From NCBI GenBank assembly GCA_002269645.1, contig NIVC01002367.1, forward strand, positions 62,001 to 126,000: a stretch of DNA of 64,000 bases, in the 5' to 3' direction. The DNA is from Macrostomum lignano. Its lineage: Eukaryota. Shown here one piece after another: positions 13,548 to 54,057 of the stretch; positions within the stretch are counted from its first letter, which is position 1; the number at the start of each line of letters is the position of its first letter. The translations under genes were made by a program, and so were the position numbers. Below the pieces are notes generated by a model. The model did no database searches. It was not told the origin of the DNA and worked only from the letters and a program-made list of their open reading frames with translations.

Positions 13548-13549
13548 AC

Positions 13550-23610: not shown

Positions 23611-23611
23611 T

Positions 23612-23742
23612 CGATGAGGCCGACAGACGAAGCGATGAGGCCGACAGACGAAGCGATGAGGCCGACAGACGAAGCGATGAGGCCGACAGACGAAGCGATG
23701 AGGCCGACAGACGAAGCGATGAGGCCGACAGACGAAGCGATG
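23612..23742. repeat. 21-bp tandem repeat (GATGAGGCCGACAGACGAAGC) x6
   Basis: Direct reading. Confidence 0.95.
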
Positions 23743-26700
23743 AGATGACTGGTGGAGGGCTATGACTTTGACGATGGCATGGCCTTTGCCAGCCTTACTG
23801 AATTGACTTAATTATGACTAAATTATTTCACATTGGGCGCCATGTAGAAAAAATACTAAACTAAACTAAAAACTATTTAATTGGAGTTAAATTGAAGGAG
23901 CAGTAAGTGGGCGCAGGGCCCAAACCGATATATTTATAGAACATTTAACTTTGGGGGGTTGAGCCTAGAATAATAAAGAGAGGGGGTGGAGTGCGCGACT
24001 GAAGAGAGAGGCGAGAATGGAGAGCCAATCAGAAGGCAGCAAGGGAGAGAGAGATAAGAATAACAAGATTGAGCTAGACAGAGAGAGAAAACGGAGTAAA
24101 CAGAGACAATTGAAGGTGAACTAAGAAATGACTAGGAAAGTCGCGACACGCACATCTCGCAAGCACCGGTCGACAGCCTCCAAATCCTTCCGGTTTGTCA
24201 TAGAAATCTCGTCCCACACAATTAGACGCGCTGTGCGAAATACATCAGCTTGTTTGGACTGCACTCCAACAGCGCACACGTCCTTGTTTGAGCGTAATAC
24301 CCGAATTGGTATCTTGAACCTGACATGGAAAAATTTGGGTATCAAACAGCAGAGGAAGTATTCACATATTTACTTGTTTAATTATTCGTAAGTTACCAAT
24401 AATTTACAAATTAAATATAAACAACTCACGTGGAATGCGCAGTTTGTCCACCTGGCAACAGAGTCGCTGCGATTCCAGAAGCCGCAACGGCGAGAGCGAC
24501 TTCACCCCGGCTGGGCACGAAGGCCAGCAAAACCTCCAGCAGGAAGGTTTTGCCAGTGCCAGCGGGCGCGTCCAGGAAGTGCAAGCCGCCGTTGCCGCTC
24601 ACAAGATCCTGAGTCACTGACTCGTACACGGCTTTCTGCTCGTCTGTTAGCATTGGTAAGCGTGCCTCAGTAATCTGCGCTTGCTCAATCGTATCGAACT
24701 GCATCAGTCCATCTTGAGGCATCACGGAGGCCGCAGGCAAGCCGAACTCTGGCAGGCTTCTCCCACCCATGGAGGTCAGCATGCTCTGCAGCTCGCGGAG
24801 CGCTAGGTCAGTAATCTCCTCGGCACTTAGATCTCGATGGTGGAACCGCAGGTCCTCGCACATATCTTCGGCAAAAGAGCACCAGAGGTCGTTGCCATCC
24901 TCAGGCTCGCCCCATATGAGAATGACAGCCAGAAGGTGTCTCAGAGCTCTTGGCACTCTTGACTGAACGGCCTCAGCTAGGCACCGCCGCCAGTGGTCAT
25001 CTCGCTGCAACAGGCCAAGTGCCATGCAAGCAGCCTTGGCGCTGGGATGCACAACGCCGTCCACGGTCTGCAGCGCCTCGAAGCTGGTTGGTCCCTTGAC
25101 TCGCAAAAGGAGCATGCGAACATAAAATAAATCACCAGTTCTTGGGTTCACCGTGTACATGCGTGCAACGTTTGTGTTCCGCACTACACCCGGGTGGCCA
25201 TCGGCTTCGCGCCTCGCTTCGCCCGCCGCCACACTCTTTCACTGGCATGCCACACGAAGTAGGACGGCACCTCCGTGTAGAGCAAGGACCGAGCGAACTC
25301 GTCAGTACGGCACAGCTTGAAAAATGCCGTCAACGTAGAGTCCCTCGGCGTCCTGACTCTAGCACTTGCGGTCTGCTCGTTGAAATACACGAGCTGCTCC
25401 TCCGACTTGTGAACGCAGAGCCGGATGACCGCCGGAAATCTGTCGTGCACCTGATCAGAAGGTGGGAGAGAAATAATCACTTTTAAGTTTTTCCGAATAC
25501 AAAAAGCCATAGCTTTGCAATATTTAAAATTTAAAATATTTATTACTTCAAAGCCCAAAATTGTATTCACAGCTTCCATTGGGCCAATGTAGCGCGCAGA
25601 CAGATACTCCTTGATTTCATCACGCGGCCTCTCTCCATCGTTTGCCGCTACCGTTTGTGCCGGCTGCTGACTACCCGCACTCTGCTCTGTCGCTTCAGCA
25701 GAATTCTGATTGGCATTGACTTTGAACGTTGCCATGTCGCCGCCCTTCAGCAAGTACTTGATCACGTACTTGACCGACTTTACAGTGGCACAAACTTCAA
25801 CGTTCATGTGGCACGCAAACTGGAGCAACAGTTCAGGGCTATAAGGCACAACCCACCTGTGGTTTAAGGATAAAAACATTGTCAAACGTTTCCAACATAA
25901 AATACAAGAGGCATCTAATACTCATGACTCGCCTATTGTCCATGCGAATGCTGCGGCCTTTGAACAGTTTGTCCACTGTAAATCCACCTATCTCAGGCGA
26001 CAGTCTGCGGTACAGTGGGTAGCCAGTATCGCTGGTCAGCGTCACCTGCTGGAACTCCTTCGGAAAGCCCTTGCTGCATTCGCCATTCTCCATGCACGGG
26101 CACGCTGGATTGTCCTTGCCACAAGGACCATGGATCATGTGCGTTTTCACCAGCTCATACAGCACAGGCTGCTGCTGTGGGTCCGGAATCTCGGCAGACA
26201 CGATGTCATCGTATCGGTCCGGAGTCACCCGCTGGCCGCTCGCGAGCCACAGCAGAAAGTGCACATGGGGGAGACCTGGATTATCAAAAAAAGTATCAAG
26301 ACATCTTTCAGTCCAATTATCCGATCTGTATCGAATTTGCATCATACAAACCCACCTATATTTAGTATCTTTATAACGATATAAATTTCATAAAATTTAA
26401 TACTGAGACTTGCACTCACCACGCTTTTGGTACTCTAGCGAGCAGACGTGCGCGGCCTCTTTCCCATAGCGCTTCGTTAGCTGGGCCAGCAGAGCTTTCT
26501 TCTTCATTTCAAAGACTCGGCTAACAATGTCCGGCCGGTGTTCAGCCCGCTGTCCAGGCAGCAGCTGGGCGCTGATCTCAGGCCAATTCGGATTGCATGT
26601 TGCCGTGACAAACAGGTCCGGCTTACCAAACTTGTGAACATAGGTCATAGCGTCCTGCAGCCTCTCCATCAGGTACCTTGGCCTACCAACGAAGCTTGAG

Positions 26701-26989
26701 GACAGAAGCACATGTGCGGGCTTGCCTATGCCTATGTCACTCGGATCTCTGTCGGTAGACCTGCCATCAGCTGCAAACAGAGCGTCCCGCAGACCGCTAT
26801 ACGTCTCGCTGCGCAGGTCCTGCTGATCGGTCCGCAAATACAGCAGACTCTCTGCCTCAATCTTGGCACACATGTCCACCAAGTACTGCTGAAATAATCT
26901 TCGGCCATAGTGTAGCACAGTGAACTGGCCCGCTCGCACCATGATTTCGCTCGCGTATTACTTCATTGGCGTCAATTTCTTGCTTCTAT

Positions 26990-27920: not shown

Positions 27921-28173
27921 TTTTGTGTAGTGTGTTGAATTATATAAAAGTGTGTAGCTTTTATATAATTCCACACTCACTCACAAAATTGTAGCCGCCA
28001 AAGTCGTCAACCAATAACCAAAGTCGTCAGCCAAAGTCGTCAGTCGACCTTTGGATTTCCGCAGGGAGTATGGATTTCCCTAGTCCATAGACCATAGAAT
28101 ATACGTTCAATAGTCACGCAGCCATGGCATGCTAGATTCCCCTATGCACATAGACAAGCCAATGAGAATTGAT

Positions 28174-28776
28174 TGACGACTTTGGCTGACGACTTTGGCT
28201 GACGACTTTGGCAAATTGACGACTTTGGCTGACGACTTTGGCAAATTGACGACTTTGGCTGACGACTTTGGCTGACGACTTTGGCAAATTGACGACTTTG
28301 GCTGACGACTTTGGCAAATTGACGACTTTGGCTGACGACTTTGGCAAATTGACGACTTTGGCTGACGACTTTGGCTGACGACTTTGGCAAATTGACGACT
28401 TTGGCTGACGACTTTGGCAAATTGACGACTTTGGCTGACGACTTTGGCAGCTTGACGACTTTGGCAGCTTGACGACTTTGGCTGACGACTTTGGCAGCTT
28501 GACGACTTTGGCAGCTTGACGACTTTGGCTGACGACTTTGGCAGCTTGACGACTTTGGCTGACGACTTTGGCAAATTGACGACTTTGGCTGACGACTTTG
28601 GCAAATTGACGACTTTGGCTGACGACTTTGGCTGACGACTTTGGCAAATTGACGACTTTGGCTGACGACTTTGGCTGACGACTTTGGCTGACGACTTTGG
28701 CTGACGACTTTGGCTGACGACTTTGGCTGACGACTTTGGCTGACGACTTTGGCTGACGACTTTGGCTGACGACTTT
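28174..28776. repeat. Mixed 13/17-bp tandem array (GACGACTTTGGCT / GACGACTTTGGCAAATT), with three inverted monomers at 27997-28043
   Basis: Direct reading. Confidence 0.96.
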
Positions 28777-29466
28777 AACAGTGGTGTTTTAACTTCATAT
28801 TCTTTAACACTGGTGTTTTGACTATGGAGGAAATAATAGAATAGAGTGCTAGTCTGAGCCAGTTATTTTTATCTCGATCATAACATCCCTTTCCCCTCGT
28901 TCTCCCCTATTGGCTCTGGATTGCCATAGACAGTATTTTTCGTCTCGTTTTCGCTTTAATGTTTTAACACTTTTGTTTTGACTCCCTATTCTTTAACACT
29001 GTTATTTTGACCTCTATGTTTTAGCCTACTTTGATCTAAACAAAGAAAAGAGCCAACCTGCGAGAGCATGTTTGACATATTAAGCTTATGGGAGCTAATC
29101 TGCGCGAGTAAACTCAACATACGGGGCTTATGGGAGCCGATTTGCATGAACGCTTTTACCATAGACAATTAAACGAAGTAACACAAAGGGCTTTGAAAGT
29201 GCATTAATCGAAATTGAATTAGCTCTAGATGCATCCATACAATTAGATATATCTGTTGACGATCAAACACAGCGGCCTGTACAAAATCGGTCCCAGCTAG
29301 GCCTATTGGCCATAGACACAAAAGTGTATATCGCATTTCGTCGGTTATATTATATTAACAGCCCATCAGGTATAGAATTCTTCCCCTTTCGCATCTGCTC
29401 TGTTCTTAGCATCTGTTATTCTCACTAGAATTATTCAGTAAGTAGTTCAAACTGAATTAGATAAAG

Positions 29467-32400
29467 ATGGCCGATAATCAAAATAATGACAATACGGCAT
29501 GTCCAGTCTGCGCCGAGTTGCTCTGTCGAACGAGCATGGTGCGACATCTAGTGAGACGCCACGCATCATTCATCCGCGAGTTCGACTGGACCGGTGTTGA
29601 AGAACAACGACGTCCAAACGCGGGTGCGCCTATAACGGCAAAGGCGTTGGCTGTGTTGAAAGCGACCAGGTTGCAGCATGGCGGTGCTGTGTACGACATG
29701 ACAATGTGTCCACACTGCCATAAGATTGTTCGTTGTGTCGAAAGACATATAAAACGATCATGCAAGCGAAAGCCTGACGCAACAAACGCACGCCCAACAG
29801 ATGTGATTGCTCAACAGACTGTTGAACAGTCGGTCGTCAGTTTATCCGCTGGTCCGTCTACAAGTGGTTTACTCGACGGTGTAGACGTTGGACCAAGCAG
29901 TGATTCCAATTTTCAAACTGCGACCAAGACAGTCAACAGTGAACGCCGCCGCGCTCAAACGGTGACCCCGGCATCGAACACCGAACGCCAATCAGCAGCT
30001 AAGTTCGCAACCGGGTCGACCAATACCGCACCTGATCATGTTAGACCGTGTGTCGTCGAGTCTGTCGAAGAGTTGTACATCACAGACGATGGCACCCAAG
30101 TTGGACCGGATCGATTCAAACAGAGACCATCTGGCGACGACCGTGTTCATCAATCGTCTAACAGTGATTCAGTCGGCAACAGCATCACCGATGCGGTGAT
30201 ACTAAAGGCGCGCCAATTTCAAGGTAATAATATTTAATCGTTAAATTCTTCTATATTAGTAGATAGTATCGCACAATATTATTGTATACTTATCGACGTG
30301 TACTAATTACATAGTAAATGGATATTGTTTTATGCTTAAACAACCAACAGGCTATTTGACTGATCTGCAAAAAACAGCTAGTCAACTTGACAGGCTTGCA
30401 GAACAGCTTCGTCCAGACATGGAGACTAGCGACGTAGACATTGTCGATGTGACACGTGTACTCCGTGGTCACGTCGAATTGGCGTCTAAACAGCTGGTCC
30501 GTGCACTCGAGACGAGCATCAGTCAGGTCAAGCGTCCTGCTATCGATAGACTGGCCAGCGCGGTACAACGGCACCAAGAAGTAGGAGAAGAGATCGCGGT
30601 TGGTAACGTCGTCGCGACATCAGACGACGAGATTGTTGCCAGCTTATTGGACGCGATCGAACAGTGTGCCAAGGACAATGAAACTGCAGATTCTGAGCAG
30701 CAAGGCAGAGTCATTGTCGTACCAGCGCCGCCTGACAACGACCAAGCCGCCGATGTGTCGTCTGGTTCCGATGCCGACATTCAGGACGAAGCGGATGACA
30801 ATGCGGGTGGTTCCGACAGCAGTGTGAGCGAGACTGATGATCCACTTGCCGTGATCGACTATGGTGAAGCACAGTCTATCGCCGAGGACATGACTAAGCG
30901 ACTTGTCGATATTTGGTGGAAAATTAATAACAAGATCGAAGAAAACAAGTCGCATGTCCATCGTCGGAAACAACTGACCACTGCGGTTCGAGGAACGCTT
31001 GCCAAATTAAAACATAAGCTGGGCGTCAGTCTGGAGACTTGGTTAAATGCTCCGCACCAAGTTGCCACAGACTTGACAGAGATGAAAACCCGCGGTGTCT
31101 GGCAAGCAAGTACCGCCGGAGTAAAAGCATGCCAATTACAGTGCATCCTAGCCGCAGTCAAGACTCTATTGGAAAATGAGTCTGATTTCGGTGCCATCAC
31201 TGTAATTAGGGCACTCCGGTTATCGGAACCACCCAACGGCGTATTCACTGACGCAGCAGATGACGTCACTACCGCGGCCAGACTATTACATGGAATAGCC
31301 AGCGGAGTAAAGAAGTTGCCCAGCAATCTATACCATCGAAAGACAGTGTCTGCGTTTCTAATACCTCGAATCGATGCTGTCTACGTAAGTACCTGTTTGC
31401 TTGTTTGTTTGTTTGTTTGATTATATTTTTGAAATTATAATCTATATTATGTGTAAATTAGAGCTATAAACTATGATTGTGCACATGATGGTGGTGATGA
31501 TGATGATGATGGTGATGATAAGAACGATAATGATGATAATGATGATACATAAAGATGAATTTTTGCTTCTCTTATAATACACACAGGCGCAACTCGGACG
31601 AGTCAGCCGACAACAGGATAATCGGTACCATCTGAATGATGATGCGCGACAACAAAAATACACCGAGTTGTTCCTGTCTGTCGAAGAGTATGACCTCGTA
31701 AGAAACAGGCTACTGGAATTGGTCGATATGATCGAGAAACATTCCTGGTCAGATTTACCAACAGAAGGTGCCTGGTCCGACATTGCGCGCTGGTCAATCA
31801 AACGAATTCTCCGCGAGGAAGATGGCGCGATTTCATAATGCCAATCAGTCGCGAGTTGGCATTCTTGGGCACTGCAATATTCCATAGCAATCGTGTATTG
31901 CCATGGATCTATCTGTGTCGGCATCACCTCGAAGACGCGTTAAAAAACAAAGGCTCCAGTATGGATACCGTCATAACGCGATTACCACCTAGCGAGGTGC
32001 CACACAAGCAAGGTTCGCGAGGCCGTGGTGCAACACTGTTGTCACCGAGACGATTGTGTAAATCGTTCATTCTATGGTGTCAAAAGTTTGTCACGCCCGC
32101 GCTCGAAGACCTAGATGTGCAAGTGCCTGATGAAATGCAATATATCTTCCCTACTTCCAACGGGACGGCTCGAGTCACTGGTGACTATTCGAGGCTCGTG
32201 GTCGATGGTTCGGTTCGAGTGATTGGTCGCAAATACCGGGCCAGCGATGGACGGCGCAATCAATTGTCTGCGTACGCGCGTTTTCATCCGGACCAGATTG
32301 AACAGGTGACGCATTTGTACGATACTTCGAAGCCTGTTGTCACCCGGTACTACGCCGCCGCAGCAATTGACGCAGCCCGACTCGAAGTTGCTACCGACTT

Positions 32401-33492
32401 GAGGGACTGTTTCGAAAAGTTCGCAGTCAACCAAACTGGTGACGAGCGGAGCAAATCGAAATGCGCAAAAGTCCAACAGTCCATCTTGGATGCGTCGACG
32501 CTTGCGACAGCAATCGATCAGCAGACCAGTGAGTCGGCGACGAAGACGACGACGACAACGGGAAGCAGACGACGACGACGAAGCGTTAGCATCGTATTGC
32601 CAGAGCAGCACGACCAAGCCGACGTTGGTACTGCACCGACTAAGACGTCTGGCAAATGTCGCCGCTCTCAGTCGCTGTCGCCGCGTCCGCCATCGTCCGG
32701 CAAATGTCGCCTCTCTAAATCGCCGTCGCCGCGTCCGCCATCGTCCAGCAAATGTCGCTCATTACCGCCGTCGCCGCGCTCGCCGTCGTCTGGTAAGAGT
32801 CGTCTGAAATCAAACTCTCACCAGTTGGCGTCGACATTGTCATCGTCGTTGAGCAGAATGTTGCGATCCAAGTCGCCACATTCGCCACCAAAAAAAAACA
32901 ACGCGGTATTATCAATTTGCCGAACGTCGATCTAGACGCCGACGATGATGACGATGCTGACGAAGACGCCGATGACGACGGGGCAACAACTGGCTGTCAA
33001 AGAAGCGATGACGCGACTCATACGCCAAATGTACAGACTAGCCATCGCCGCCGCTGTGACAACCGATCTGTACCTAAATCGGGGTCGTTGCTCTCCTCTA
33101 TACGTACACGCATTGGATCGAGCGTACCTGCCGATTTAAGTCGATTGGCTGCTGCTAACGATGATGCTGACGATCGGCGATTAGTCCAGACGCGGTCGGA
33201 GCGGCGCACTCGTTTGTCTGGTACATCGACTGACAGTGCTACGTCTTCAGTGGCTGTTGATCAGTCGATTGCTGCGACATCGAATGTGCGATCATCGAGC
33301 AGGCGACGCAGATCACTATCAACATCTAGTATGCGTGCGAACATCACCCGACGACGATCGCAGTCCGTTGATGCAATTGACTGCGTTGCGACTGGATCGC
33401 GTGGGGGTCGACCGGATCAACAGCAACCGCAACAACACAGGAGCTGTATTGTCACCCGATCAGGTCGTGTCGTTCGGCGCACAGATGCTTGA
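29467..33492 (+). CDS. Zinc-finger + tyrosine-recombinase-like protein (Crypton-type), 3 exons: 29467-30223, 30351-31384, 31587-33492 (two apparent 1-nt homopolymer deletions at ~31833 and ~32891)
   Basis: CPVC..HLVRRH and CPHC..RHIKRSC fingers. GT-AG introns 30224-30350 and 31385-31586 join ORFs in frame. YIFPTSNG, ASDGRRNQ and QVTHLYDTSKPVVTRYY resemble the C-terminal YR boxes. Low-complexity Ser/Arg/Asp tail. Confidence 0.6.
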
Positions 33493-34259
33493 TTGAGTAA
33501 AATATCGATTTATATCTATTTTTTTACCGATTACGCCACATCACAATGGTTGTGTCCAAAACAAACAAGGAGGTAATTAGGAATTATTTCTTCGAAAAAC
33601 AAATTAAGCTTCGACCGTGTGAAACGAAATCGAAACTTATCATCAAGCCTCACTCAGTTGTAGACGCAACCATATGTGAATGAACATATGTAGTATAACT
33701 GTACATAAAATTATGCGCGCACACGTATATATATGACTAGATGTACGTGTGTTTGTTTTCCTGTCACAGATTAATACGTACATGAACCGTGTGTGTATAT
33801 AGATTAGTGCGTTTATTATTGTTGATTCATTGCAATGTAAATAGTATAGAGCGATTTAGCTTGATTGTGTGCGTTTCATACACCAAGATAATATCGAGCG
33901 CACTCTAACTAATCTATTAATAACAGTCTATATAATAATGCAATATTCAAACGAGAAGCGAGACCAATCGATTGGCTGTTGGATTGTTAATTACAACGAA
34001 ATATTGCGCTCGATATCTTCTTGTTTTTTCTTTTTAATTACTATTCTATATAATGCGTTTAATTGTTTTATATCGATTTATAATCGTCGCCATATATGCT
34101 ATTTATTGATTAATGTTTACGTACTAGCCATAACATTAAGTTGTTGGTTGAATGTTTTGATAACGGATTGATTGAAAGATTGAATGGCTGATCGATTGGT
34201 CGGTTTATTTATTTTTTTGTTGATTGATTGGTTGATTGATCGATTGATTAATTTATTGA

Positions 34260-34505
34260 TTGCTTGTCAGTTCAGTCGGTCAGTCAGTCGGATAGGGTCA
34301 ATCAGCTCAGCCAGTTCAGTTAGTCAGTTCAGTCAATCAGTTCAGTCAGCTCGGTCATCTCAGTCAATCGGTTCGTCAACCCAATCAGTCGGCCATTTCA
34401 GTCAGCTTAGTTTAGTTTAGTCAGTCAGCTAGCTTATTTCAGCCAGTCAGTCAGTCAGTTCATTCAGCTCAGACAACTCAGTTAGCTAAGTCAGTCAGTC
34501 AGTCA
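34260..34505. repeat. Degenerate (CAGT)n simple repeat, preceded by (GATT)n at 34160-34260
   Basis: Direct reading. Confidence 0.85.
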
Positions 34506-35748
34506 TCAGCCGCTCTACTTACAACTGAGCAAGAGCGAAATAGTCAGGGTTTAAAACATCGAGATGGACAGGTCGGCCTCAATCTATGTCTATGGCTGCA
34601 ACAACGTATCGAGAGTGATAAATCGATAGGGAGACTTCAAATTTTTATTCTATGGCAAAAATGGGGCAGTAGAATGAGTATTCAGCCAGAAGGGAGTTTA
34701 GAGTGTGTACAAACAGCATGCTATATTATAACCCAGACAGTTTAACTTGTACTTTCTTAATCGCAGTCACAAACGAATAGAAGAAACAAATAGGCAGGTG
34801 TGATTTTGAATTGCAGCGGCCCATGGCATGGAGAGGAGAGGAAAGCATCGGGAGAGTGGCTTCCCCCAAGATAAGTTACCCTCAGACAGCAACAGGTGGC
34901 TTCCCCAGGATAAAAGTATTCACATACAGCGTTTCCCAGAAAAAAAACAGCAGCAGCATACGTTTCATTAGACAGATTAGCGGAGGTACAGTTTGCGGTT
35001 TTCCCAGACAGATTTTCCAAGAAAGAAACCAACCTGATATTCACTAGACGGATTAAGCAGGCAGGGAGCAGGCAGATCAGTAAGCATTAGGCTAACCCAA
35101 GATAAGTTACCTCCTATACGGACGGGCCCCTCTAACCATTCCCCCCCCCAATACAAATTACCCACATGCAGCAGCATACGTTTCATTAGACGAAATGAAA
35201 TAAAAAAAATTTTTCGGCGCGAAAATTTTCTAAGTCAAAATAATTTTGACACTTAGAGAAATTTCACATTTCTCGAGCTAGCGCAGCGGTCCCCCAGAAA
35301 AAAATACTAGGCTGTGACAGGTAAGTGGTTGGGTTTGGTGTTGTGAATAATGATAGTGATAGGTAGGTAGATTGGGTGGGTTAGTTAGTTAGTCAATCAG
35401 TATGCTATATGAGGGAGTACTACTAGTGTTTATTGTTTAGTCAGTCAGTCAGCCAGCCAGCCAGCCAGCCGGTTGGTTTGATTAACAGCAGTATTAGAGA
35501 CAGAGACAAACATAAACTATCTAACATAGATAGATAGATAGATTACCATAGACTAAAGTACTAACTAGTGTCGGTTAGCATCCATTTGTCCATCCCTCCA
35601 TCCAAACAAAGTGATGTAGGGGTAAGAGATATCGACATAGCGGTATCATTCATTCAGTTGCGCATAACCAACAACCATAGACAATTAATTCTCTTTTTAA
35701 CATTGATCGCGTGCGCACTGCTCTAATCTGTCTGTTACTAATAAATTA

Positions 35749-36243
35749 CCCTCTGCGTCTCTATTAATATCTATATAATATAATGCGCTAAAAACCTATT
35801 CTATTATTAGCAACTGTTACTATAATTGGTTTGTAGATCATTCTATTATTAGCAGTTGTTACTATAATTAGTACTAGGTAGCATCTATTTATGTAAATAA
35901 TGTGTATAATTAGTAACAAATCATCTATAAATAGATGCGTTTTCACCCCTAAAGATATTAGACAACTATAGTCTATGGCTATCGGTTGTATAAGATTCAA
36001 TCACTAGTAGTTGAGCTACGAAATGAATACTCTATATCTTTAGGGGTGAAATCGCATCTATTTATAGATGATTTGTTACTAATTATACACATTATTTACA
36101 TAAATAGATGCTATCTAGTACTAAATATAGTAACAGTTACTAATAATAGAACGATCTACAAACCAATTATAGTAACAGTTGCTAATAATAGAATCGGTTT
36201 TTTAGCGCATTATATTATATAGATATTAATAGAGACGCAGAGG
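35749..36243. repeat. AT-rich hairpin: ~210-bp near-perfect arms (35749-35958 / 36034-36243), 75-bp spacer
   Basis: Arms are reverse complements (coordinates sum to 71992) with a few mismatches. Confidence 0.93.
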
Positions 36244-36381
36244 GGAGGGAGGCCCCTTGCGCGCACGCTAGTACTAAATCTAGTACTAATTATAGTAACA
36301 GTTGCTAATAATAGAATGAACTACAAACAATACAATACATTTGTCCTATCTCTACCCCCCCCCCCCCCCCACCTTAACTCA

Positions 36382-36440
36382 CTAACCCTAACCCTAACCC
36401 TAACCCTAACCATAACCCTAACCCTAACCGTAACCCTAAC
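36382..36440. repeat. Interstitial (TAACCC)n telomere-like tract preceded by a poly-C run
   Basis: ctaaccctaaccctaaccctaaccctaaccataaccctaaaccctaaccgtaaccctaac. Confidence 0.9.
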
Positions 36441-37801
36441 AACAACCAAATATAATTCTGGGGGATCGCTGCGCTAGCTCGAGAAATGTGAAATTTCTCT
36501 AAGTGTCAAAATTATTTTGACTTAGAAAATTTTCGAGCCGAAAAAATTTTTTTATTTCATTTCGTCTAATGAAACGTATGCTGCTGCATGTGGGTAATTT
36601 TTCACGCAAACTGTACCTCCGCTAATCTGTCGAATGAAACGTATGCTGCTGCTGTTTTTGGATAACTTATCTGGGGAAGCGCCAGCAGGTTAGTTTATTG
36701 GAAAATTTATCCGTGGAAGCCTCTAAGTGTGCCCCCCCTCAGCACCACTCTGACAATGTGCCTGAGCGATAACAGGTTTGTTTCCTGGAAAATCTATCTA
36801 GGAAAGCATGATTTCTATCTTGGAAAAAACTGCCTGGGGAAACCGCAAACTGGGGGGGGGAATGGTTAGAGGGGCCCGTCCGTATAGGAGGTAACTTATC
36901 TTGGGTTAGCCTAATGCTTACTGATCTGCCTGCTCCCTGCCTGCTTAATCCGTCTAGTGAATATCAGGTTGGTTTCTTTCTTGGAAAATCTGTCTGGGAA
37001 AACCGCAAACTGTACCTCCGCTAATCTGTCGAATGAAACGTATGCTGCTGCTGTTTTTGGATAACTTATCTGGGGAAGCGCCAGCAGGTTAGTTTATTGG
37101 AAAATTTATCCGTGGAAGCTTCTAAGTGTGCCCCCCCCCTCAGCACCACTCTGACAATGTGCCTGAGCGATAACAGGTTTGTTTCCTGGAAAATCTATCT
37201 AGGAAAGCATGATTTCTATCTTGGAAAAAACTGCCTGGGGAAACCGCAAACTAGCTTTTGATTCAAACTATGCACTCTTGTAGGCATTAGTAAATCAGTT
37301 AAAGGCATAGACAACATTAATTGATTCAGTATACAAGTGCAGCTATACTGTTTCAGTTGACCTTCAACTTTAAACTGTACTTAGAGACGCTCTGAATTGG
37401 CAATTTTCCATTCAATCCATAGATACAAGTTTCCTATACAGGGCGCATACACTCATGGAATGCTATAATATACAATCTGGAGTGGAAATATCGTAGGTTG
37501 AACCATAGACAATTGTCTGTTAGTCAGTTGTATTCTATATTTGCACATAGTATTGCATTTAGAAGTAAAGCGAGATTCCAATCCATTATACTAGCTATAG
37601 AACTCCTTGTTACATGCGCGCTCGATTTATCAAGTGCACACTGTACAAAATAGACAGTTAATTATCAGACTATGTTAACACATAGACATTTTTATTGACT
37701 TAAAACTCTACTTAAAGCTCGATTAATCAGTCTGAGTCCTCTCTCGCATTTTTTCTCTCCGTCGCTATCTCTCACCTATATAGCAACAAATACAATTCAA
37801 C

Positions 37802-38042
37802 ATGCAACGGCAGCCTACTGACAACAACGTTACCGGTTGCGGAGATGGTGCTACGCGAACTATACCGAATCGACTAGTCACCATCGTAAACAACCTGTGG
37901 TCAACGGTGCTGTCGTTTGTATCAGATACATCGGCCACCGACAATGTACAACAAGATGCTGCTATCGAGTTGTGCAATACGGCTGCCGATTGTAATGTAG
38001 ATGCCGGTGCTGCCAATGCTGTTGCTGCTGATACTGCTGCTG

Positions 38043-38086
<44 letters not shown>

Positions 38087-41027
38087 AATGGTAATGGTTC
38101 TACTGCTGCTGCTGCTGCTGGTGGTGGTTCTACTGCTGCCGATGCTGATACTGATGATGCTGAGGCTGCTGCTGAACCGTCTACAGTGCCAAAGTCGCAT
38201 ACTCCTACGCCTGATGTGTCCGCTCATACACCGGTTGTGTGGCGTGACAGCACCATCGACGAGGACGATCATGCGAATAGAATTGTTGCCACCTTTTCTC
38301 CGGCTGCATCATTCTCGACTGGCGATCTCATTGGCGAGTTTTGTCGAGCATCGACTCCAAAACAATCGTCAGCCGCGGCGAATGACTTACTCAACGCGTC
38401 TATCTCGTCAGTCAACAGTCAGCTGTTATTCTGCAATGACGACGAGTTTATGCGCGATGTAGAACCGGCAGCCAATAATGGCAACAAAAGTGAGTAGAAA
38501 ACGATTATATTTTATCAATATATCTAAGCTTAACTAGTTCAAATGATTGATAGACACAGGTCTGTTATACATGAGCGTTTGAATTGACTGATTGATTGAT
38601 TGATTGATTGTTTGTTTGCTTGGTTTGTTGAATGAAAGGATTAAATTGTATAAATTAGCGTCTTTTTTTTTAACAAATAATTATCACAGGGCCGAGTGTT
38701 CAAGATGGCGCGTCGTTTGCTTCGCCGACGAGCAAACCAAGTTGTAAAAGGCGACGTCAACAGCTAATGCGCTCCGACTGCGAACTTGTATCAGATGCAT
38801 CTTCGTCATCACAGTTGTCGAGCGCAAAGCCGTCGCCCTATCAACGACACACTGGAAAATCGCCAGACGATACGCGGCGATCTGATGCGTCCAGTAAAAT
38901 AGACGCGCCCAATCATCGGATGACCATAGCATCAGCCCGTAGACCGAATCGGACGATATTGTCCAGCAGCAGTGCCTCTGGCGGTTCTGTTAGCTCGCAT
39001 ACGATCGATCGTATCCGGTCACACGCATTGTCACGCCATGCGTCTGCCTCGAATACGGCGACAATGAGAGACAATGCATTGGCTGCGATAAGAGCGAGAT
39101 GTGAGAAGAGGGCAATGTGTGTACAGTCGCCATCAACAACGGGTGCAGCGGCGGCGGCGGCGGCGGAGACGATTGATTCGGCAGCGACTATGACACCGGC
39201 GATGGCGGCGTCGGCGGCGGCGGCGGCGGCGGCGGCGGCGAATGACTCATCGTCAATCCGTAGTCAATCGCTGACACAGTTGTCTGTCGATGACATCGGT
39301 TTGACTGATGCAGCCGGTCTAGCCGCAAACACCACCGCGTATGCCAATAGAAACGCGCGTCCGACTGTCCCAAGGAGTGTACAACCCGGATACGCACTAG
39401 CCTCCGGGCCAATACGTTTCTATCGAAATCGGGACGTCGAGCCGCTTAACGCATTTTCGAGCGAAGACCGTTACGCACTCAACTCAACGCGGATACACCA
39501 CGTCGTGGAACTGTCCGGTGTGCTTGATGCTGACCAGCTTAAAGTGCGATTATACACGGCATTGCGCGGTCGAAGTAATGCGCTTGTTGTCGCCAATCTA
39601 ACTGGAAATTCGCCCAACATGCTGGATGACGATGAACAAATCCATAGGGCGCTTAATCGTCACCGACAATCTAGGCGTGTGGTTGAAGACGATCTGGATC
39701 ATAACTGGTGCGGAGTTACGTTGTACATGCAAACACCACGCAGCATGTCTGGCTACCAGTTATATACCATCATTCACCAGATACTGTCTACAGACCCGAA
39801 TATCCAGTATTTAGTAAGCGACAACGATTGCAGAATCCTTATCGCCGGCGTCCGAAATGTCAAGGCTGCGTTAGGCTCAGTTACAAGACACGATGGTTGC
39901 GCCGTGCTACGTAATGTAAATATGTCCGACTGTAGCATGCTCGTGTCAGCGTATCATTGGATCGAAACTCATAGCGAATTAGTAGTCACACCAGATCCAG
40001 ATGACGATTTTCTGATGCGCCACGTTTCGTGTAAGCACGAGATGATTCGTCTTTTTCAACGCGTACAGAAGATTCGTCGAATTAATCTAGAGCGTCTCAT
40101 TGGTTGCGCGTGCTGTGCTCATTTTATAAATCGGCATACTCGCGATCGTACCATCACCGACGTCTCTGATGACAACCATTCGACGACGACTGGTGTTGAC
40201 AATCGGACCAATGAACGCGAGGCTGATGCCATTAATCAGACTAATGTTGCTGCCGACGCCACCGCCGCCGTCGCTACCGACAACGCCTGCACCGCCGACA
40301 ACAATGCCGCCATTGCCGCCGCCTGCGCCGACGCTGATGTACAAATTGTCGACAGACCGCTATTTGAACGACGACGCGGATGTCCAACGATGCGAGCCGT
40401 GTGCGAAGCTCTCCGCCAACGCAAAGGTGTGGTGTACCTATGGGGGCCGCCTGGTGTTGGCAAGACTCACAGCGTAGCTGCGCACTGCGGTGACAATCGT
40501 GTTGTCAATATAGTCCCGTCACGAACTACAGCCAACACGTTTTTATTCGATCCGTTGGACATCGCTGTACATCGCGTCCTGTTCATAGACGAGGTTCGAC
40601 CAGAGCTGTTCGATTCAAAGTCTGACGCTATGGTGAGTAAATTAGTACATAATTGTTGATTGTTGATAATAAATTATGCAAATTTATGTAATTTATCAAT
40701 ATTGTTGATATTGATTTATGTTAATGTTTATTGTCCATCGTGCAGGTTCCGCTCCTACGGTTGATCAATGGAGACACCTTCAATGTCAACCAGAAGTATC
40801 AATCGATAGTGAGTCACCATTGGCGAGACAGACTACTCGTCCTGGCTGGTCACGACCCTGTGAATGCGTACAGCCCCGATGTACAAAGACGTCTTCGGCA
40901 TGGGCACACATTGCAAGGTCGACTCGTCTCGGTGCTGCACGTTGGGCATCCGCTATATGGGACGTACGACTGTGACGGGACGTGCGAGCCTGTACGAGAT
41001 CTAACAGGTGATCCCATACGCGATTGA
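37802..41027 (+). CDS. Spliced ~970-aa protein with low-complexity N-terminus and C-terminal Rep-like/SF3 helicase (CRESS/parvovirus NS1-like); exons 37802-38489, 38690-40632, 40746-41027
   Basis: GTGAGT...CAG introns 38490-38689 and 40633-40745 join three ORFs in frame (2913 nt, no stops). Walker A GPPGVGKT, Walker B VLFIDE, B'-like LINGDTFNVNQKY, motif C-like LVLAGH, Arg finger VQRRL. Confidence 0.85.
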
Positions 41028-42087
41028 TTGCGGTGCCCGACTGTTTGTTTTAAATTTCGCGGCATTAATAGCAGCAGTAGCAGCAGCAGCATCAGCATTA
41101 TATCAGCATTTATTATAGCAGCATTTCTAGCAGCAGCAGCAGCAGCAGCAGCAACATATTAACAGATTATGTATTTTATAGATTAGATGTATATATTATT
41201 TTTCCAATTAATTTAACTATCCCAGTCAATATGAGACTGATTATGAAATAGCTAGGGCAACAAAATAAGCTAGCAGATATTTTTATCTCAATCAATTCTT
41301 CTTTTAATATCTCCTTCCTTGTGTCCATTCTAATACTCGTAGTTGACAGAAAGTACATTTTCTTGTGAGAGTTTGTGTAATCTGGTTTGACACATAGACT
41401 AAATTGTATGAGAATGAAATGTGTGAACCTGCTAGTTGTCTATGGTAATCAGTCGACATTCTAATAATCTGAATATCGACATCTCAATAGCTGAACATGT
41501 CTGTTTGTAGTGGCTAGCATGGTCGGTGCATGCGGGTGAACATAAATGTTTGCATTTGTGAGTATGGTCGGTGCACACTGGTGAACAGGACTGTTTGCAT
41601 GCAGTGGCGATTTTAATCGGTGCACATGGCTGGTTGCAGTGGCGAGCATGGTCGATGCACACGACTGACTGTTAAAACTGGAAAATTATTGAGATAAACC
41701 AACTGACATCTGTATATTAATTAGTAAGTAGGGAAAAAATCACAATGTTTTATATGTTGCTTCTGCCATTTTTTAATCGTTTGTACATATATATATACAT
41801 ATATTATTTATTTATGTGATTATATTTTTGCTCGTGGCTTGTACATACTATTGTATCCATAGTTGATTGGTTGACTTTGTTTCAAAGTGGTCAATTTGTT
41901 GTTTTGTTAAATACTTGTATGTGTACAGTGCGTGCCGTTACCGTTATGCATACGTTATAAAATTTGTTTGTATAATATTTAAGTGGTTTATTGACCAATA
42001 TTCCGTTGCTGGTTGTTGGTGCCAAAACTTTGTCCAAGACATGCACACACACACAAATTCATATGGGTCAATGTTTTAGTCATGGCC

Positions 42088-43578
42088 GGTCACATCACCA
42101 TTCAATTTGGTCGCATCACCATTCAACTTGGTCACATCACCAATCAGCCTGGGTCTCATCACCAGTCAGCCTGGGTCACATCACCAGTCAGTCAGTGTCA
42201 CATCACCAGTCAGTCTGAGTCATATCACCAGTCAGTCTGGGTCACATCACCATTCAGTCTGTTTCACATCACCAGTCAGTCTGGGTCACATCACCATTCA
42301 ACTGGGTCACATCACCATTCAACTTGGTCACATCACCATTCAACTTGGTCACATCACCAGTCAACTTGGTCACATCCCAAGTCAACTCGGTCACATCCCA
42401 ATTCAACTTGGTCACATCACCATTCAACTGGGTCACATCACCGTTCAACTTGGTCACATCACCATTCAACTCGGTCACATCACCAGTCAGTCAGGTCACA
42501 TCACAAGTCAACTCGGTCACATCACCAGTCAACTCGGTCACATCACCAGTCAACTCGGTCACATCACCAGTCAACTCGGTCACATCACCAGTCAGTCAGG
42601 TCACATCACAAGTCAACTCGGTCACATCACCAGTCAACTCGGTCACATCACCAGTCAACTCGGTCACATCACCAGTCAGTCGGGTCACATCACCAGTCAG
42701 TCGGGTTACATCACCAGTCAGTCTGGTTACATCACCAGTCAGTCAGGTCACATCACCAGTCATGTCACATCACCAGTCAGGTCACATCACCAGTCAGTCA
42801 GGTCACATCACCAGTCAGTTGGGTCACATCATCAGTCATTAAGGTCACATCACCAGTCAGTCGGGTCACATCACCAGTCAACTCGGTCACATCACCAGTC
42901 AGTCGGGTCACATCACCAGTCAACTCGGTCACATCACAAGTCAACTCGGTCACATCACCAGTCAGTCGGGTCACATCACCAGTCAGTCAGGTCACATCAC
43001 CAGTCATGTCACACCACCAGTCAGGTCACATCACCATTCATTAAGGTCACATAACTAGTCAGTCGGGTCACATCACCAGTCAACTCGGTCACATCACCAG
43101 TCAGTAGGGTCACATCACCAGTCAACATGGTCACATCACCAGTCAGTCAGGTCACATCACCAGTCAACTCGGTCACATCACCAGTCAGTCGGGTCACATC
43201 ACCAGTCAACTCGGTCACTTCACAAGTCAGTCGGGTCACATCACCAGTCAGTCGGGTCACATCACCAGTCAACTCTGTCACATCACCAGTCAGTCGGGTC
43301 ACATCACCAGTCAACTCGGTCACATCACAAGTCAACTCGGTCACATCACCAGTCAGTCGGGTCACATCACCAGTCAACTCGGTCACATCACAAGTCAACT
43401 CGGTCACATCACCAGTCAGTCGGGTCACATCACCAGTCAGTCGGGTCACATCACCAGTCAGTCAGGTCACATCACAAGTCAACTCGGTCACATCACCAGT
43501 CAACTCGGTCACATCACCTGTCAGTCGGGTCACATCACCAATCAGTCGGGTCACATCACCAGTCAGTCGGGTCACATC
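42088..43578. repeat. 21-bp satellite (GGTCACATCACCAGTCAGTCG / ...CAACTC)
   Basis: Direct reading. Confidence 0.97.
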
Positions 43579-44231: not shown

Positions 44232-44339
<108 letters not shown>

Positions 44340-44645
44340 AATAAACAGCGATATAGAATATAGAATATAGAATATGACATGCTCAACAATGACTAACCTG
44401 ATTCCAGTCGGCTGTGTGTAATTCGTTCAACCCAGCTATAATCCATTTGGTTGTTTGTTCTATGCTCTGTCTGCTGTACACTGCGTGCGCAGCAGCATTT
44501 TATTGTTGAATCAAACGTAAAAGCGAATCTTAGATATATTGATAAAATATAATCGTTTCTACTCACTTTTGTTGCCATTATTGGCTGTCGATTCTACATC
44601 GCGCATGAACTCATCGTCATTGGCGAATAACAGGATAAGTGGTCC

Positions 44646-44649
<4 letters not shown>

Positions 44650-44727
<78 letters not shown>
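44650..44727. repeat. (CT)n microsatellite
   Basis: Direct reading. Confidence 0.98.
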
Positions 44728-44731
<4 letters not shown>

Positions 44732-45359
44732 CGGTTTAGGCGGGTTAGCTATTTTGGCTTTCTTTTCTCTGTGGTCCAAACTAGACAGACTGTTGCAAAT
44801 ATCACACCCGTTCAGCCAGTTTATCGATCTTATCAGAGCCTGAAATGCGCAGTCAATGTAATGTTTTTCACTGACTGTTTGGTTGAGTGTACATAAGCTT
44901 ATGGGGTGCAAAGTGTGTGGCAGGCAATGAATAGCTTTGTGTTTAGCCATTAGGAGCTTCTGTGTAATATAATATAAAATAGACTGTCTGTCCCGTTCTT
45001 TTCACAGAAAATAAAAAAATCGATAAAACGGTTAACCATAGACTATGCAAATCAGTATCAGACTTACTCTAAAACCTGTTTTGTTTTTACAGTTTGTATT
45101 GAAGACCGAAGGATGTTTTTTATTTGTCTTCTCTTTGATTTCAACACCGTACAGTTCTTCGCATATACCCTCTTACGGCGCTGTTATAAAAGAGACCCCT
45201 TCTGTCTGGCGAGAGCTAACTAGTCCAATCAAGACGAAGAAACGCGTATTGAATCAAATTCGACTATGCTGTTTTGACAAACACGTTGTTAGTTCGAACT
45301 TCGGGCACCTCGCATCAATTCTACATAATTCGACTTCTGTAGGAGGCTTCGACCAGACT

Positions 45360-45490
45360 ACCATTGCTGTTGCTAATACTACTGCTGCTACCACCACTAC
45401 TACTACTACTACTACTGCTGCTACTAGTACTACTACTACTACTACTACTACTACTATTACTACTGCTACTGCTGCTGCTACTATTGATGC
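45360..45490. repeat. (ACT/GCT)n trinucleotide repeat
   Basis: Direct reading. Confidence 0.9.
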
Positions 45491-45619
45491 TATGCGCGGT
45501 GATTTCGTATGCTTTTGTACAATCTGTACAATCAACCGGCTGTGGCGTCTGCATCGTTTGTTGCTACTGTCACTTTGGCCTGTACTACGTCTAGACATTC
45601 GACTGACTGACTGACTGTA

Positions 45620-48700: not shown

Positions 48701-48720
48701 ATGTCCGAGTCCAACAAAGA

Positions 48721-48773
<53 letters not shown>

Positions 48774-49591
48774 GGCAGCAGCAACAGCAGCAACATCTGC
48801 AAGAGTCGCGCACTGCTGACCATCATCTAGTCTGGGCAGACGACATCACAGACGCTGATTTGGTGGCTGCGTGTGTATCTGTTGAAGAACAACAGCATAC
48901 AACGCAGCAAACACAGATGATGGCGTCTGTATCGTATGCCGGGACCAGACGCGCCGTGTCAGCGATGCATTCGGCAGGCATCGACTGGGCTGAACAGCTC
49001 GACGAAGCAATGCGCTGGTTAGACGGCGATTTGTATGCAGCAAACGCGATTGTGACCGACGTTGCTGCGACATCGATGCCGTCTAACTCGCGTAAGCGGC
49101 GTCATTCGTGCATCGGCCAAGCTATGGACGTCGATGCTGATGCCGATGTCGACACCCTGTTCGACTCAGATACGCTGGCAGAGTGCGACGCACTAGAAAC
49201 AGCTTATTATGCTTCTATGTGCAATGCCGCCAGTGACAACGTCGAACAGTCGCCGACTGATGCGACTACAGATCACGCAAATGCGGCCGCCGCTGATGAT
49301 ATGTACATATCAGACGCGGAACTTGTTGCCGTATGCGAAGAGGTCGAGGCGACTGTCCATCTGAGCGCCATCGATCAATGTGCACCACCGGACGAAGCGT
49401 TGGCTAGCCCAATTAGTCAAGTCGACCCGTCCGCGTCGCTGTACGACTCCGATGGCAATATGCTAGAGGAGTCCAGCTTTGCCGTTGATCGGCGGTCAGT
49501 CGCCTGCCAGGTAAACATGTGTCGACCTCGATGCAATCGCACCTGGACTCGACTGTACCGTAGATGGCGTTCTCGTCGATCCACCAACTAG
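48701..49591 (+). CDS. Acidic, polyQ-headed protein of unknown function with two D-rich helical motifs
   Basis: 296-codon ATG ORF with the same codon style as the YR and Rep genes; possible 1-nt indel near 49514. Confidence 0.6.
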
Positions 49592-50320: not shown

Positions 50321-50900
50321 CCAGTCTGGTCACATCACCATTCAACTGGGTCACATCACCAGTCAGTCGGGTCACATCACCAGTCAACTCGGTCACATCA
50401 CCAGTCAGTCGGGTCACATCACCAGTCAACTCGGTCACATCACCAGTCAGTCGGGTCACATCACCAGTCAACTCGGTCACATCACCAGTCAGTCGGGTCA
50501 CATCACCGGTCAACTCGGTCACATCACTAATCAGTCGGGTCACATCACCAATCAACTCGGTCACATCACCAGTCAACTCGGTCACATCACAAGTCAACTC
50601 GGTCACATCACCAGTCAGTCGGGTCACATCACCAGTCAACTCGGTCACATCACCAGTCAGTCGGGTCACATCACCAGTCAACATGGTCACATCACCAGTC
50701 AGTCAGGTCACATCACCAGTCAACTCGGTCACATCACCAGTCAGTCGGGTCACATCACCAGTCAGTCGGGTCACATCACCAGTCAACTCGGTCACATCAC
50801 CAGTCAGTCGGGTCACATCACCAATTAACTCGGTCACATCACTAGTCAATGCAGTCACATCACCAGTCACCACAGTCACATCACCAGTCACCAATCATCA
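50321..50900. repeat. 21-bp satellite, same family and orientation as 42088-43578
   Basis: Direct reading. Confidence 0.96.
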
Positions 50901-54047: not shown

Positions 54048-54057
54048 AAGTTAGCAA

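Follow-up and report, generated by a model that had tools for sequence, protein, structure and literature searches.

A candidate virus-derived two-gene unit recurring in the genome of the flatworm Macrostomum lignano

Two neighboring genes in a 64,000-nucleotide stretch of the Macrostomum lignano genome (contig NIVC01002367.1, positions 62,001 to 126,000; here called the window) belong together as a recurrent pair: one encodes a protein with two zinc fingers (gene 1), the other a Rep-like protein with a superfamily 3 (SF3) helicase ATPase (gene 2). The reading that we favor, at a probability of roughly one half, is that this interval is a recurrent, long-resident, virus-derived two-gene unit of M. 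lignano and not a transposon delimited by the short sequence word found around it. As described in the initial annotation, the genes are co-oriented and contain introns; these are of the GT-AG type, and database proteins were found that cross the same splice junctions (P0001 and P0017 for gene 1; P0003 for gene 2, in agreement at the second junction). The gene features of the window are as follows.

29467-33492, plus strand: gene 1, first to last base, with GT-AG introns at 30224-30350 and 31385-31586
29500-29763, plus strand: two zinc-finger motifs of gene 1 (C-x2-C-x12-H-x4-H and C-x2-C...H-x4-C)
31587-32440, plus strand: conserved C-terminal domain of gene 1, the part initially called "YR-like," about 30% identical to the paralogue at a second locus
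37802-41027, plus strand: gene 2, intact, 970 amino acids, two GT-AG introns (exons 37802-38489, 38690-40632, and 40746-41027)
39388-40140, plus strand: N-domain within the conserved region of gene 2, aligning collinearly with its counterparts in P0008, P0009, P0012, and P0013
40348-41024, plus strand: superfamily-3-type helicase ATPase of gene 2, interrupted by the intron at 40633-40745

The N-terminal 460 or so amino acids of gene 2 are of low complexity (poly-Ala and Ser-rich). Its ATPase has the Walker A motif GPPGVGKT and the Walker B motif FIDE, and both (as GK[T] and D[E/D]) were conserved in every aligned member of the family. The Asn of motif C was present in four of eight members; Gly was found instead in the window protein, in its M. 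lignano paralogue P0004, and in P0005, which comes from a metagenome. An exhaustive HMMER search returned 11 relatives. The window protein matched P0012 and P0013 at E = 2e-4 to 4e-4, and these two exceed the Pfam cut-offs for PPV_E1_C (39.0 bits against a cut-off of 26.5), DUF5906, and RNA_helicase; the longest PDB match of the family profile was to the papillomavirus E1 helicase (1tue_A, E = 2.3e-5 over 107 positions). Searched directly, the window protein yielded sub-threshold matches to generic AAA and P-loop Pfam families, passed no SF3 Pfam cut-off, and found nothing specific in Pfam, NCBIfam, PHROGs, or PDB and nothing in a word-indexed protein search. Homology to SF3 helicases is thus reached through P0012, P0013, and the family profile, and on this comparison gene 2 is related to the SF3 helicases of virus-type replication proteins. 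Structure prediction with AlphaFold2 from nine sequences gave a mean pLDDT of 49, with the N-domain part below 50; a Foldseek search of this model against PDB was uninformative, and against the viral folds of BFVD it placed Rep and SF3-helicase proteins on top, none of them significant.

The other half of the original Rep/SF3 assignment, a HUH nuclease, did not hold for the window copy. Its N-domain aligned collinearly from end to end with those of P0012 and P0013, and of five N-domain sequences one had the His cluster and one had Tyr at the YxxK column, in both cases P0013, so that the HUH reading consists of motif patterns in this single relative. In the window protein the His pair is missing and Ser stands where the Tyr would be expected; it does not bear the HUH nuclease signature. 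The N-domains of all members had no match in Pfam (Viral_Rep-type families included), PDB, or PHROGs. Like the Rep proteins of CRESS-DNA viruses, parvoviruses, and plasmids, the window protein places an N-domain ahead of an SF3 ATPase with Walker A and B, and its relative P0013 has HUH-like and YxxK-like motifs; unlike them, it lacks both nuclease motifs and the motif-C Asn. Since the Walker motifs and the whole gene 2 domain were kept across paralogues only 43 to 58% identical while the nuclease signature is gone, it has probably retained the ability to bind DNA and ATP without being able to nick. Circularity was considered for four small contigs on which relatives lie (L001, L003, L004, and L012), but none overlaps at its ends. 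Look-ups for exact matches to P0001, P0002, P0003, P0017, and the longest open reading frame of gene 2 led to no contig.

Gene 1 encodes two N-terminal zinc fingers, acidic and low-complexity linkers, the conserved C-terminal domain, and a Ser/Pro/Arg-rich tail. Its reading frame in the window is not continuous, contrary to the first description, and carries one frameshift relative to the near-identical proteins P0001 and P0017; should the final low-complexity part, which runs to 33492, also be coding, there may be a second frame change. Both zinc fingers are retained in P0017 (named "C2H2-type domain-containing protein" in UniRef) and in the paralogue at the second locus, and their only Pfam match was a weak one to zf-Di19 (E = 0.012). 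Protein searches with single sequences and profiles recovered only M. lignano near-copies: UniRef proteins of 98% identity, with seven distinct protein models at 90% identity or more. By these searches, the C-terminal domain is known only from Macrostomum. P0017 is a full-length, uninterrupted model that matches the window copy as a mosaic of regions with 74%, 97%, and 92% identity. The near-identical copies could be homeologues or assembly redundancy in M. lignano, a neopolyploid. Ras-GEF, the UniRef name of some gene 1 fragments, was rejected, as no Pfam match backs it.

The expectation that the two genes would co-occur elsewhere was borne out on M. lignano contig NIVC01001938.1 (L002), retrieved through gene 2 alone, where diverged paralogues of both lie about 5 kb apart; pairing was examined at these two loci, the window and L002.

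L002 8454-10759, plus strand: gene 2 paralogue, 46% amino acid identity
L002 17651-14941, minus strand: gene 1 paralogue, 30% amino acid identity

Within the gene 1 C-terminal domain, the blocks PWIYLxRxHL and LPPxEVPHKxG are invariant between the two copies. The pair is arranged in tandem in the window and convergently at L002, and a fixed element architecture is therefore absent. Intron positions also differ between the paralogues, which points to long residence.

The foremost alternative is that an ancient Rep-like insertion was exapted with a zinc-finger partner into a domesticated host gene pair, copied by segmental or whole-genome duplication, with nothing mobile about it and with the recurring word as a common promoter element. 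Spliceosomal introns and host-like homopolymer expansions in both genes, the intactness of gene 2, and the ordinary host genes (COG7 and EME1) that L002 adjoins are all consistent with this; moreover, the replacements of the nuclease residues and of the motif-C Asn are conserved in three sequences, suggesting selection for a new function. We nonetheless consider a host pair possible rather than probable: the two loci have no flanking synteny in common and differ in pair orientation, one genome contains at least three deep gene 2 lineages along with mosaic gene 1 copies, frame changes occur in window gene 1 and in L002 gene 2, and transposons and satellites surround the locus in the window.

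The word in question has an 8-nt core, CCATAGAC, extended in some copies to the 13-mer ACCATAGACAATT, and its sites relative to the genes were located by a motif scan.

28085, 28924, 29159, and 29310, all plus strand: four CCATAGAC copies in noncoding DNA 5' of gene 1 (region 28085-29317, no strand assigned)
29158, plus strand: ACCATAGACAATT 13-mer within the DNA upstream of gene 1
34588-34595, minus strand: a single copy of the word as GTCTATGG, 1.1 kb 3' of gene 1
35546, 35675, and 35971: three CCATAGAC copies inside the intergenic foldback-like structure (the 13-mer at 35674, plus strand, among these positions)
37502-37514, plus strand: ACCATAGACAATT 13-mer, 300 nt 5' of the gene 2 start codon
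41434-41446, minus strand: inverse copy of the 13-mer (12 of 13 matching), 410 nt 3' of the gene 2 stop codon

Of these, the three 13-mers, the near-perfect inverse, and the copy at 34588 are where the initial annotation placed them. Counting the inverse, ACCATAGACAATT was matched four times in the window against 0.09 expected by chance, and the core 15 times against 1.19 expected (largest value among shuffles, 5). The 15 core sites, of either orientation, are confined to the interval from 28085 to 56009 and have no sequence in common in their flanks, and the inverted 13-mer pair does not extend beyond the 13-mer itself. L002 contains 10 CCATAGAC sites, at 7961 or from 17686 onward and thus upstream of both paralogues, in mixed orientation and only 5' of each gene; the 7.9 kb of that contig with COG7 and EME1 contain none. 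Despite the high divergence of the proteins, a 16-nt identity, CCATAGACAATTAAAC, is shared between window position 29159 and L002 positions 20670 and 20705. At both loci the word is thus most abundant in noncoding DNA 5' of the two genes, in either orientation. Against a background of about 85 kb of M. lignano genome, we infer that the word (13 to 16 nt in some copies) is a putative binding site of the family, promoter-like or iteron-like, perhaps bound by the gene 1 or the gene 2 protein, rather than an element end; it could alternatively be an ordinary M. lignano transcription-factor site. More doubtful is an iteron-based reading in which flatworms would harbor a mobile or episome-derived class of elements, hitherto undescribed, with this pair at its core. 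Gene 1 would then encode a zinc-finger protein with a highly diverged recombinase-type domain that acts, together with the nuclease-dead Rep/SF3 helicase, on CCATAGAC-type iterons, and active copies would exist elsewhere in the Macrostomum genome.

The initial annotation instead proposed one 12.3-kb element, or two cassettes, with inverted ACCATAGACAATT ends, moved by a Crypton-like gene 1 and replicated by gene 2. Bracketing by an inverted motif is literally present, in that the pair lies between the 13-mer and its 12/13 inverse, with a plus-strand copy to the left and a minus-strand copy to the right of each gene, and both families do co-occur at L002. The bracket is unspecific, however: with 15 dense copies in both orientations, reaching far past the proposed ends to 56 kb and set in unrelated flanks, inverted pairs are expected around any gene and are not evidence of element ends. 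Neither L002 gene is bracketed by an inverted pair, and no transposon bounded by terminal inverted repeats with ACCATAGACAATT as its ends was found at the two loci. Gene 2, in addition, is without the nicking residues needed for rolling-circle initiation. A literature search on the motif string, and on Crypton in Macrostomum, gave nothing relevant.

The same proposal makes gene 1 a tyrosine recombinase, an assignment that none of the library and profile tests run supported. The catalytic residues of these enzymes follow the order R-K-H-x-x-R-H/W-Y. The window copy shows F-33-[D]xxR-32-Y, the same spacing as measured for F...HxxR...Y in seven E. coli tyrosine recombinases, and a conserved R (YLxRxHL) stands 29 residues ahead of a conserved K (PHK). 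Other features diverge: His II is Asp in both paralogues, the R-to-H distance is 19 residues versus 23 in E. coli and the H-to-Y distance 13 versus 9 to 10, L002 has Gln in place of the first candidate catalytic Arg, and in a gap-free alignment the candidate His and Tyr of one paralogue do not line up with those of the other. At E of 10 or less, no integrase or recombinase family was matched in Pfam by the gene 1 domain, the L002 paralogue, or full-length P0017, or in NCBIfam and PHROGs by gene 1; recombinases were likewise absent among PDB matches by sequence and by profile. Against a profile of the seven E. coli recombinases, hmmsearch --max gave no match and hhalign a probability of 0.3%, which is weak negative evidence because the gene 1 profile holds about 1.5 effective sequences. 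An AlphaFold2 model of the domain from three near-identical sequences had a mean pLDDT of 36, too low for a fold search. Both "YR-like" and "Rep" were pattern calls: gene 1 matches no library model and gene 2 directly matches only generic P-loop families. The likeness to Cryptons is confined to motif-level resemblance and the above spacing in the window copy, in contrast to the lack of any model, profile, or fold match and of catalytic residues conserved between paralogues. Cryptons are not known to encode a helicase. Movement as a motif-ended element is, on balance, improbable.

Between genes 1 and 2, repeat analysis revealed an inverted-repeat structure, and a shorter inverted copy of gene 2 sequence lies beyond the pair.

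34943-37252, strand not assigned: foldback-like structure, with outer inverted arms (34943-35299 and 36456-37058, 98 to 100% complementary), an inner palindrome of 500 nt (35749-36244), a direct duplication of 250 nt (36605-36851 and 37004-37252), and about 10 telomere-like CTAACC units (36382-36440)
44556-44633, minus strand: 78-nt inverted copy, 92% identical, of the gene 2 exon 1/intron 1 junction

The 78-nt copy is itself flanked by inverted (AG)n and (CT)n arrays at 44233-44337 and 44650-44728. Rfam identified no RNA family across the window.

The large foldback is what might be expected had the locus been the remnant of a larger integrated DNA virus that lost its structural genes, either a Polinton-like or virophage end module or an element of the PEVE/PIVE kind. 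Polinton-like viruses and virophages have end modules in which a tyrosine recombinase and a primase/SF3 helicase lie next to inverted repeats (PMC11296320), so the initial remark that this combination had not been described in any eukaryotic element needed correcting: recombinase and SF3-helicase pairings were already known in eukaryotes. The window resembles these modules in that a gene first taken to be of integration type adjoins an SF3 helicase gene near inverted repeats; it differs in that its genes are spliced and come without primase domain, virion genes, or terminal inverted repeats, and in that gene 1 is not demonstrably a tyrosine recombinase. The planarian elements PEVE (extrachromosomal in Girardia tigrina) and PIVE (integrated in Schmidtea mediterranea) carry PPV_E1_C-type helicases and inverted repeats (PMC3198968). 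They share with the window a flatworm host, a virus-type SF3 helicase of the papillomavirus-E1, parvovirus-NS1, or circovirus-Rep kind, multiple copies in the genome, and proximity to inverted repeats (PMC3198968). PEVE, suggested at the outset as a comparator, is a reasonable one in kind. They are unlike window gene 2 in that the latter lacks nuclease motifs, has introns and the long low-complexity N terminus, and is linked to a zinc-finger partner of a kind not reported for PEVE or PIVE. None of the matches from PDB, BFVD, and the protein search was named as a protein of PEVE or PIVE. Scans for either gene family in JGI metagenome contigs and in IMG/VR gave nothing. Neighboring open reading frames showed retrotransposon or Helitron matches or nothing in Pfam, with no capsid, protease, or packaging ATPase, in a test that is weak for diverged capsid proteins. 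With no primase domain found, the recombinase unproven, and the foldback absent from L002 and without a further copy in the window, there is only a slim chance that the locus is such a viral remnant. That two unrelated orphan genes merely sit side by side in a stretch rich in a common 8-mer is highly improbable: neither gene has a direct library match and the region is repeat-rich, but both families recur within 5 kb at L002, a locus reached by gene 2 alone, which contradicts chance, and the word is common to both loci over up to 16 nt.

For the virus-derived unit that we favor, the course of events would be as follows. Gene 2 would have descended from a virus- or plasmid-type replication initiator, with a Rep-like N-domain ahead of its SF3 ATPase, and its lineage would then have lost the nuclease His pair and Tyr and had the helicase motif-C Asn replaced; gene 1 would be its partner, contributing two zinc fingers and the conserved C-terminal domain. 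The history that we consider most likely begins with the arrival in the lineage of a replicon-type module from a virus-like or mobile element; this module would have given rise to several diverged copies and stayed long enough to acquire lineage-specific introns and homopolymer expansions. The unit relates to known kinds, being allied both to the endogenous Rep-like elements of flatworms and to the integrase and SF3-helicase modules of Polinton-like viruses.

Genes resembling the Rep of small DNA viruses are scattered across animal genomes, usually as lone decayed fragments. Gene 2, by comparison, is an intact and spliced Rep/SF3 descendant that has lost its nicking residues, has kept its ATPase, and recurs with a zinc-finger partner and a shared word. 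M. lignano is a model organism for regeneration whose transposon content is little characterized. If the link between the two genes holds genome-wide, it would represent either a compact case in which a replication protein of viral origin was given a new role along with a partner that binds DNA or, alternatively, a new type of integrative element in M. lignano.

The zinc-finger gene (gene 1) and the Rep/SF3-helicase gene downstream of it (gene 2) were found together again at a second M. lignano locus, L002 (contig NIVC01001938.1), which was fetched through gene 2 alone as the contig of the database protein P0004 and which also bears a paralog of gene 1. The initial annotation, which had described two genes with introns and had named their co-occurrence as a check, was borne out on both counts, the pair being seen at two loci in total.

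Genes of the pair in the window and at L002
Window, start 29467, plus strand: gene 1, with introns 30224-30350 and 31385-31586 (splice model; the second junction is spanned by the related M. lignano proteins P0001 and P0017)
Window, exons 37802-38489, 38690-40632, and 40746-41027, plus strand: gene 2, with clean GT-AG splicing and an open 970-aa frame
L002, 8454-10759, plus strand: gene 2 paralog, 46% amino acid identity
L002, 17651-14941, minus strand: gene 1 paralog, 30% amino acid identity, carrying both the zinc fingers and the conserved domain

The pair is tandem in the window and convergent at L002, and the intron positions of the paralogs are unlike. Comparison of the two loci revealed no similarity at the DNA level and no common synteny in the flanks, L002 adjoining COG7 and EME1. 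The L002 copy of gene 2 has one frame change, and a second frame gap can be modeled as an intron.

The 13-mer ACCATAGACAATT, which had been proposed to form the ends of a mobile element, occurs on the plus strand at 29158, 35674, and 37502, with an inverse copy (12/13) at 41434-41446, all as initially reported; these 4 matches, inverse included, compare with 0.09 expected by chance in the window. Its 8-nt core, CCATAGAC, is real and strongly enriched in the window, with 15 copies versus 1.19 expected (largest shuffle, 5); the background for the motif comprised ~85 kb of sequence. These copies all fall within 28085-56009, lie in both orientations, and had nothing in common in their flanks. Because of this density, inverted pairs of the word are expected around any gene, and the “bracketing” of the genes is therefore without weight as evidence for element ends. 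At L002, no inverted pair of the word flanks either gene, and the window's large inverted-repeat structure is missing. All 10 copies of the word there are upstream of the two paralogs, at 7961 or at positions from 17686 on, and the 7.9 kb containing the host genes has none; 16 nt (CCATAGACAATTAAAC) are common to one L002 tandem unit and the window site at 29159. Since the word is common to two unrelated sites at which the genes are co-located, and since the paralogs are deeply divergent, the evidence from these two loci argues that the two genes form a functional unit that has multiplied within the M. lignano genome.

The word was also encountered in other settings. Two perfect 16-bp palindromes, GTCTATGGCCATAGAC, each consisting of two head-to-head copies of the word, lie 102 nt apart (55892-55907 and 55994-56009) within a duplicated unit of ~100 nt, and no gene of either family was found near them. 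One further copy (45036-45043) directly precedes the start codon of a plus-strand open reading frame (ORF) at 45045-45614, which encodes 189 aa, is Thr-rich, and has a weak, mucin-like match as its sole Pfam match.

The frame of gene 2 is unbroken in the window copy, and its second splice junction agrees with the database protein P0003. Direct library scans with gene 2 gave P-loop matches only, all subthreshold, and a word-indexed protein search gave no match; an exhaustive HMMER search of 1.84 billion representatives recovered 11 relatives, two of them from M. lignano (P0003, 58% identity; P0004, 43%) and the remainder from short metagenomic contigs. Two of the latter, P0012 and P0013, passed the Pfam cutoffs for the SF3 helicase families PPV_E1_C, DUF5906, and RNA_helicase. 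Against the PDB, the longest match of the gene 2 family profile was to the papillomavirus E1 helicase (1tue_A; E = 2.3e-5; 107 positions), the other matches covering the P-loop only. A low-confidence AlphaFold2 model of gene 2 (pLDDT 49) matched nothing in the PDB; in a viral structure library, Rep and SF3-helicase proteins topped its list, none significantly. The family alignment is collinear across the entire conserved 500 aa, including an N-domain ahead of the ATPase. Every aligned member has Walker A and B. Four of 8 members have Asn in motif C; the residue is Gly in the window protein, in its M. lignano paralog P0004, and in the metagenomic P0005. The N-domain of P0013 carries a His cluster and a Y-x-x-K motif, which, judged by motif patterns, would be in the order and spacing of an HUH Rep nuclease. 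Among the five sequences covering the N-domain, the His cluster and the Tyr are each found in one, and the window protein has neither at the aligned positions. The Pfam relatives, profile match, and alignment thus support gene 2 as an SF3 helicase of a virus-type replication protein, as first suggested, and do not support, for this copy, the accompanying proposal of an HUH Rep driving rolling-circle replication.

The 1,115-aa metagenomic relative P0006 (ENA contig L005, 6491-9838) consists of ten tandem 106-aa units, each matching ~75 aa of the gene 2 N-domain (LNSTxIHxxVE region). The exon 1/intron 1 junction of gene 2 recurs in inverted form as a 78-nt stretch of 92% identity at 44556-44633, flanked by inverted arrays of (AG)n and (CT)n (44233-44337 and 44650-44728). 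A 296-aa plus-strand ORF (48701-49591) with poly-Gln and acidic repeats has an N-terminal WxDxxxDxD-type motif that recurs near the N termini of gene 2 and its L002 paralog; by BLAST, this resemblance was not significant (E of ~0.2 to 5), and no helicase part was found downstream of it.

The M. lignano proteome contains at least 7 distinct protein models of gene 1, at identities of 90% or higher. The C-terminal part of gene 1 is 98% identical to UniRef M. lignano proteins, which places the window in this free-living flatworm or a very close relative. P0017, which UniRef names a C2H2-type domain-containing protein, is a mosaic relative to the window copy, identity being highest in the middle (97%), lower in the C-terminal part (92%), and lowest in the zinc-finger exon (74%). 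Relative to the near-identical P0001 and P0017, the window copy has one frameshift, and, provided that the last low-complexity segment is coding at all, a second frame change may lie ahead of it. Two zinc-finger motifs at the N terminus are kept in the L002 paralog and P0017. Some M. lignano fragments of the family (among P0001, P0002, and P0014 to P0018) bear the UniRef name Ras-GEF domain-containing protein, which no Pfam RasGEF match backs.

That gene 1 is a tyrosine recombinase, as initially called, now appears doubtful, and the term is unfit as a label. The window motif F-33-[D]xxR-32-Y does have the spacing measured on Escherichia coli tyrosine recombinases. The His II position is Asp, the R-to-H and H-to-Y distances are unlike those in E. 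coli, the first candidate catalytic Arg is Gln in the L002 paralog, and the paralogs have their candidate His and Tyr in different alignment columns. Searches with the window copy, the L002 paralog, full-length P0017, and a profile assigned the conserved C-terminal domain to no integrase or other family in Pfam, NCBIfam, PHROGs, or the PDB. In comparisons with a reference profile built from seven E. coli recombinases (annotated K-12 record), unfiltered hmmsearch returned no match and the hhalign probability was 0.3%; the structure model of the domain (pLDDT 36) was unusable.

The neighborhood of the pair is rich in transposons and satellites, with many tandem arrays of 18- to 102-nt units in the window.

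Repeats and transposon remains in the window
295-10987: BEL/Pao-type LTR retrotransposon in fragmented frames (DUF1759 gag-like, zinc knuckle, RT/RNase H, integrase)
19785-26942, minus strand: left Helitron remains (Helitron_like_N, PIF1, Pif1_2B, and UvrD_C pieces), divided by a 102-nt tandem array at 21.5-23.7 kb
59544-61433, plus strand: right Helitron remains (OTU protease and Pif1 C-terminal pieces)
62689-63855: second RT/RNase H ORF, at the right end
11349-14591, 21576-23744, 42088-43578, 50322-50890, and 52540-54881: recurring satellite arrays

The same satellite families (units of 18, 21, 23, and 102 nt) recur to the left and right of the pair, and some are oppositely oriented; we would guess that they are Helitron-associated arrays. 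A foldback-like structure lies between the two genes (34943-37252). Its outer inverted arms are 98 to 100% complementary, and it also has an inner palindrome of 500 nt at 35749-36244, a direct duplication of 250 nt, and, at 36382-36440, ~10 interstitial CTAACC units resembling telomere repeats. This structure, which L002 lacks, may represent an insertion of its own, of the foldback or MITE type. Between the paralogs at L002 (11201-11922) lies the remnant of a mariner/Tc1-like element, which has a perfect 48-nt inverted repeat and an ORF with a helix-turn-helix.

Known comparators include endogenous Rep-like genes and the planarian PEVE/PIVE elements (PMC3198968). The initial annotation knew of no described eukaryotic element pairing a recombinase with an SF3 helicase; such a pairing is already described, since Polinton-like viruses and virophages have end modules of tyrosine recombinase plus primase/SF3-helicase (PMC11296320). 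No virion genes, primase, or relatives in viral collections were found for the region of the gene pair. The two-gene unit is best read as an endogenized virus-like or mobile replicon module, or as the domesticated descendant of one, in which the word CCATAGAC would be a putative binding site, promoter-like or iteron-like. The unit's introns and expanded homopolymers, together with a loss of catalytic residues that is conserved, argue that it has long been resident in the M. lignano genome and that its function has changed.
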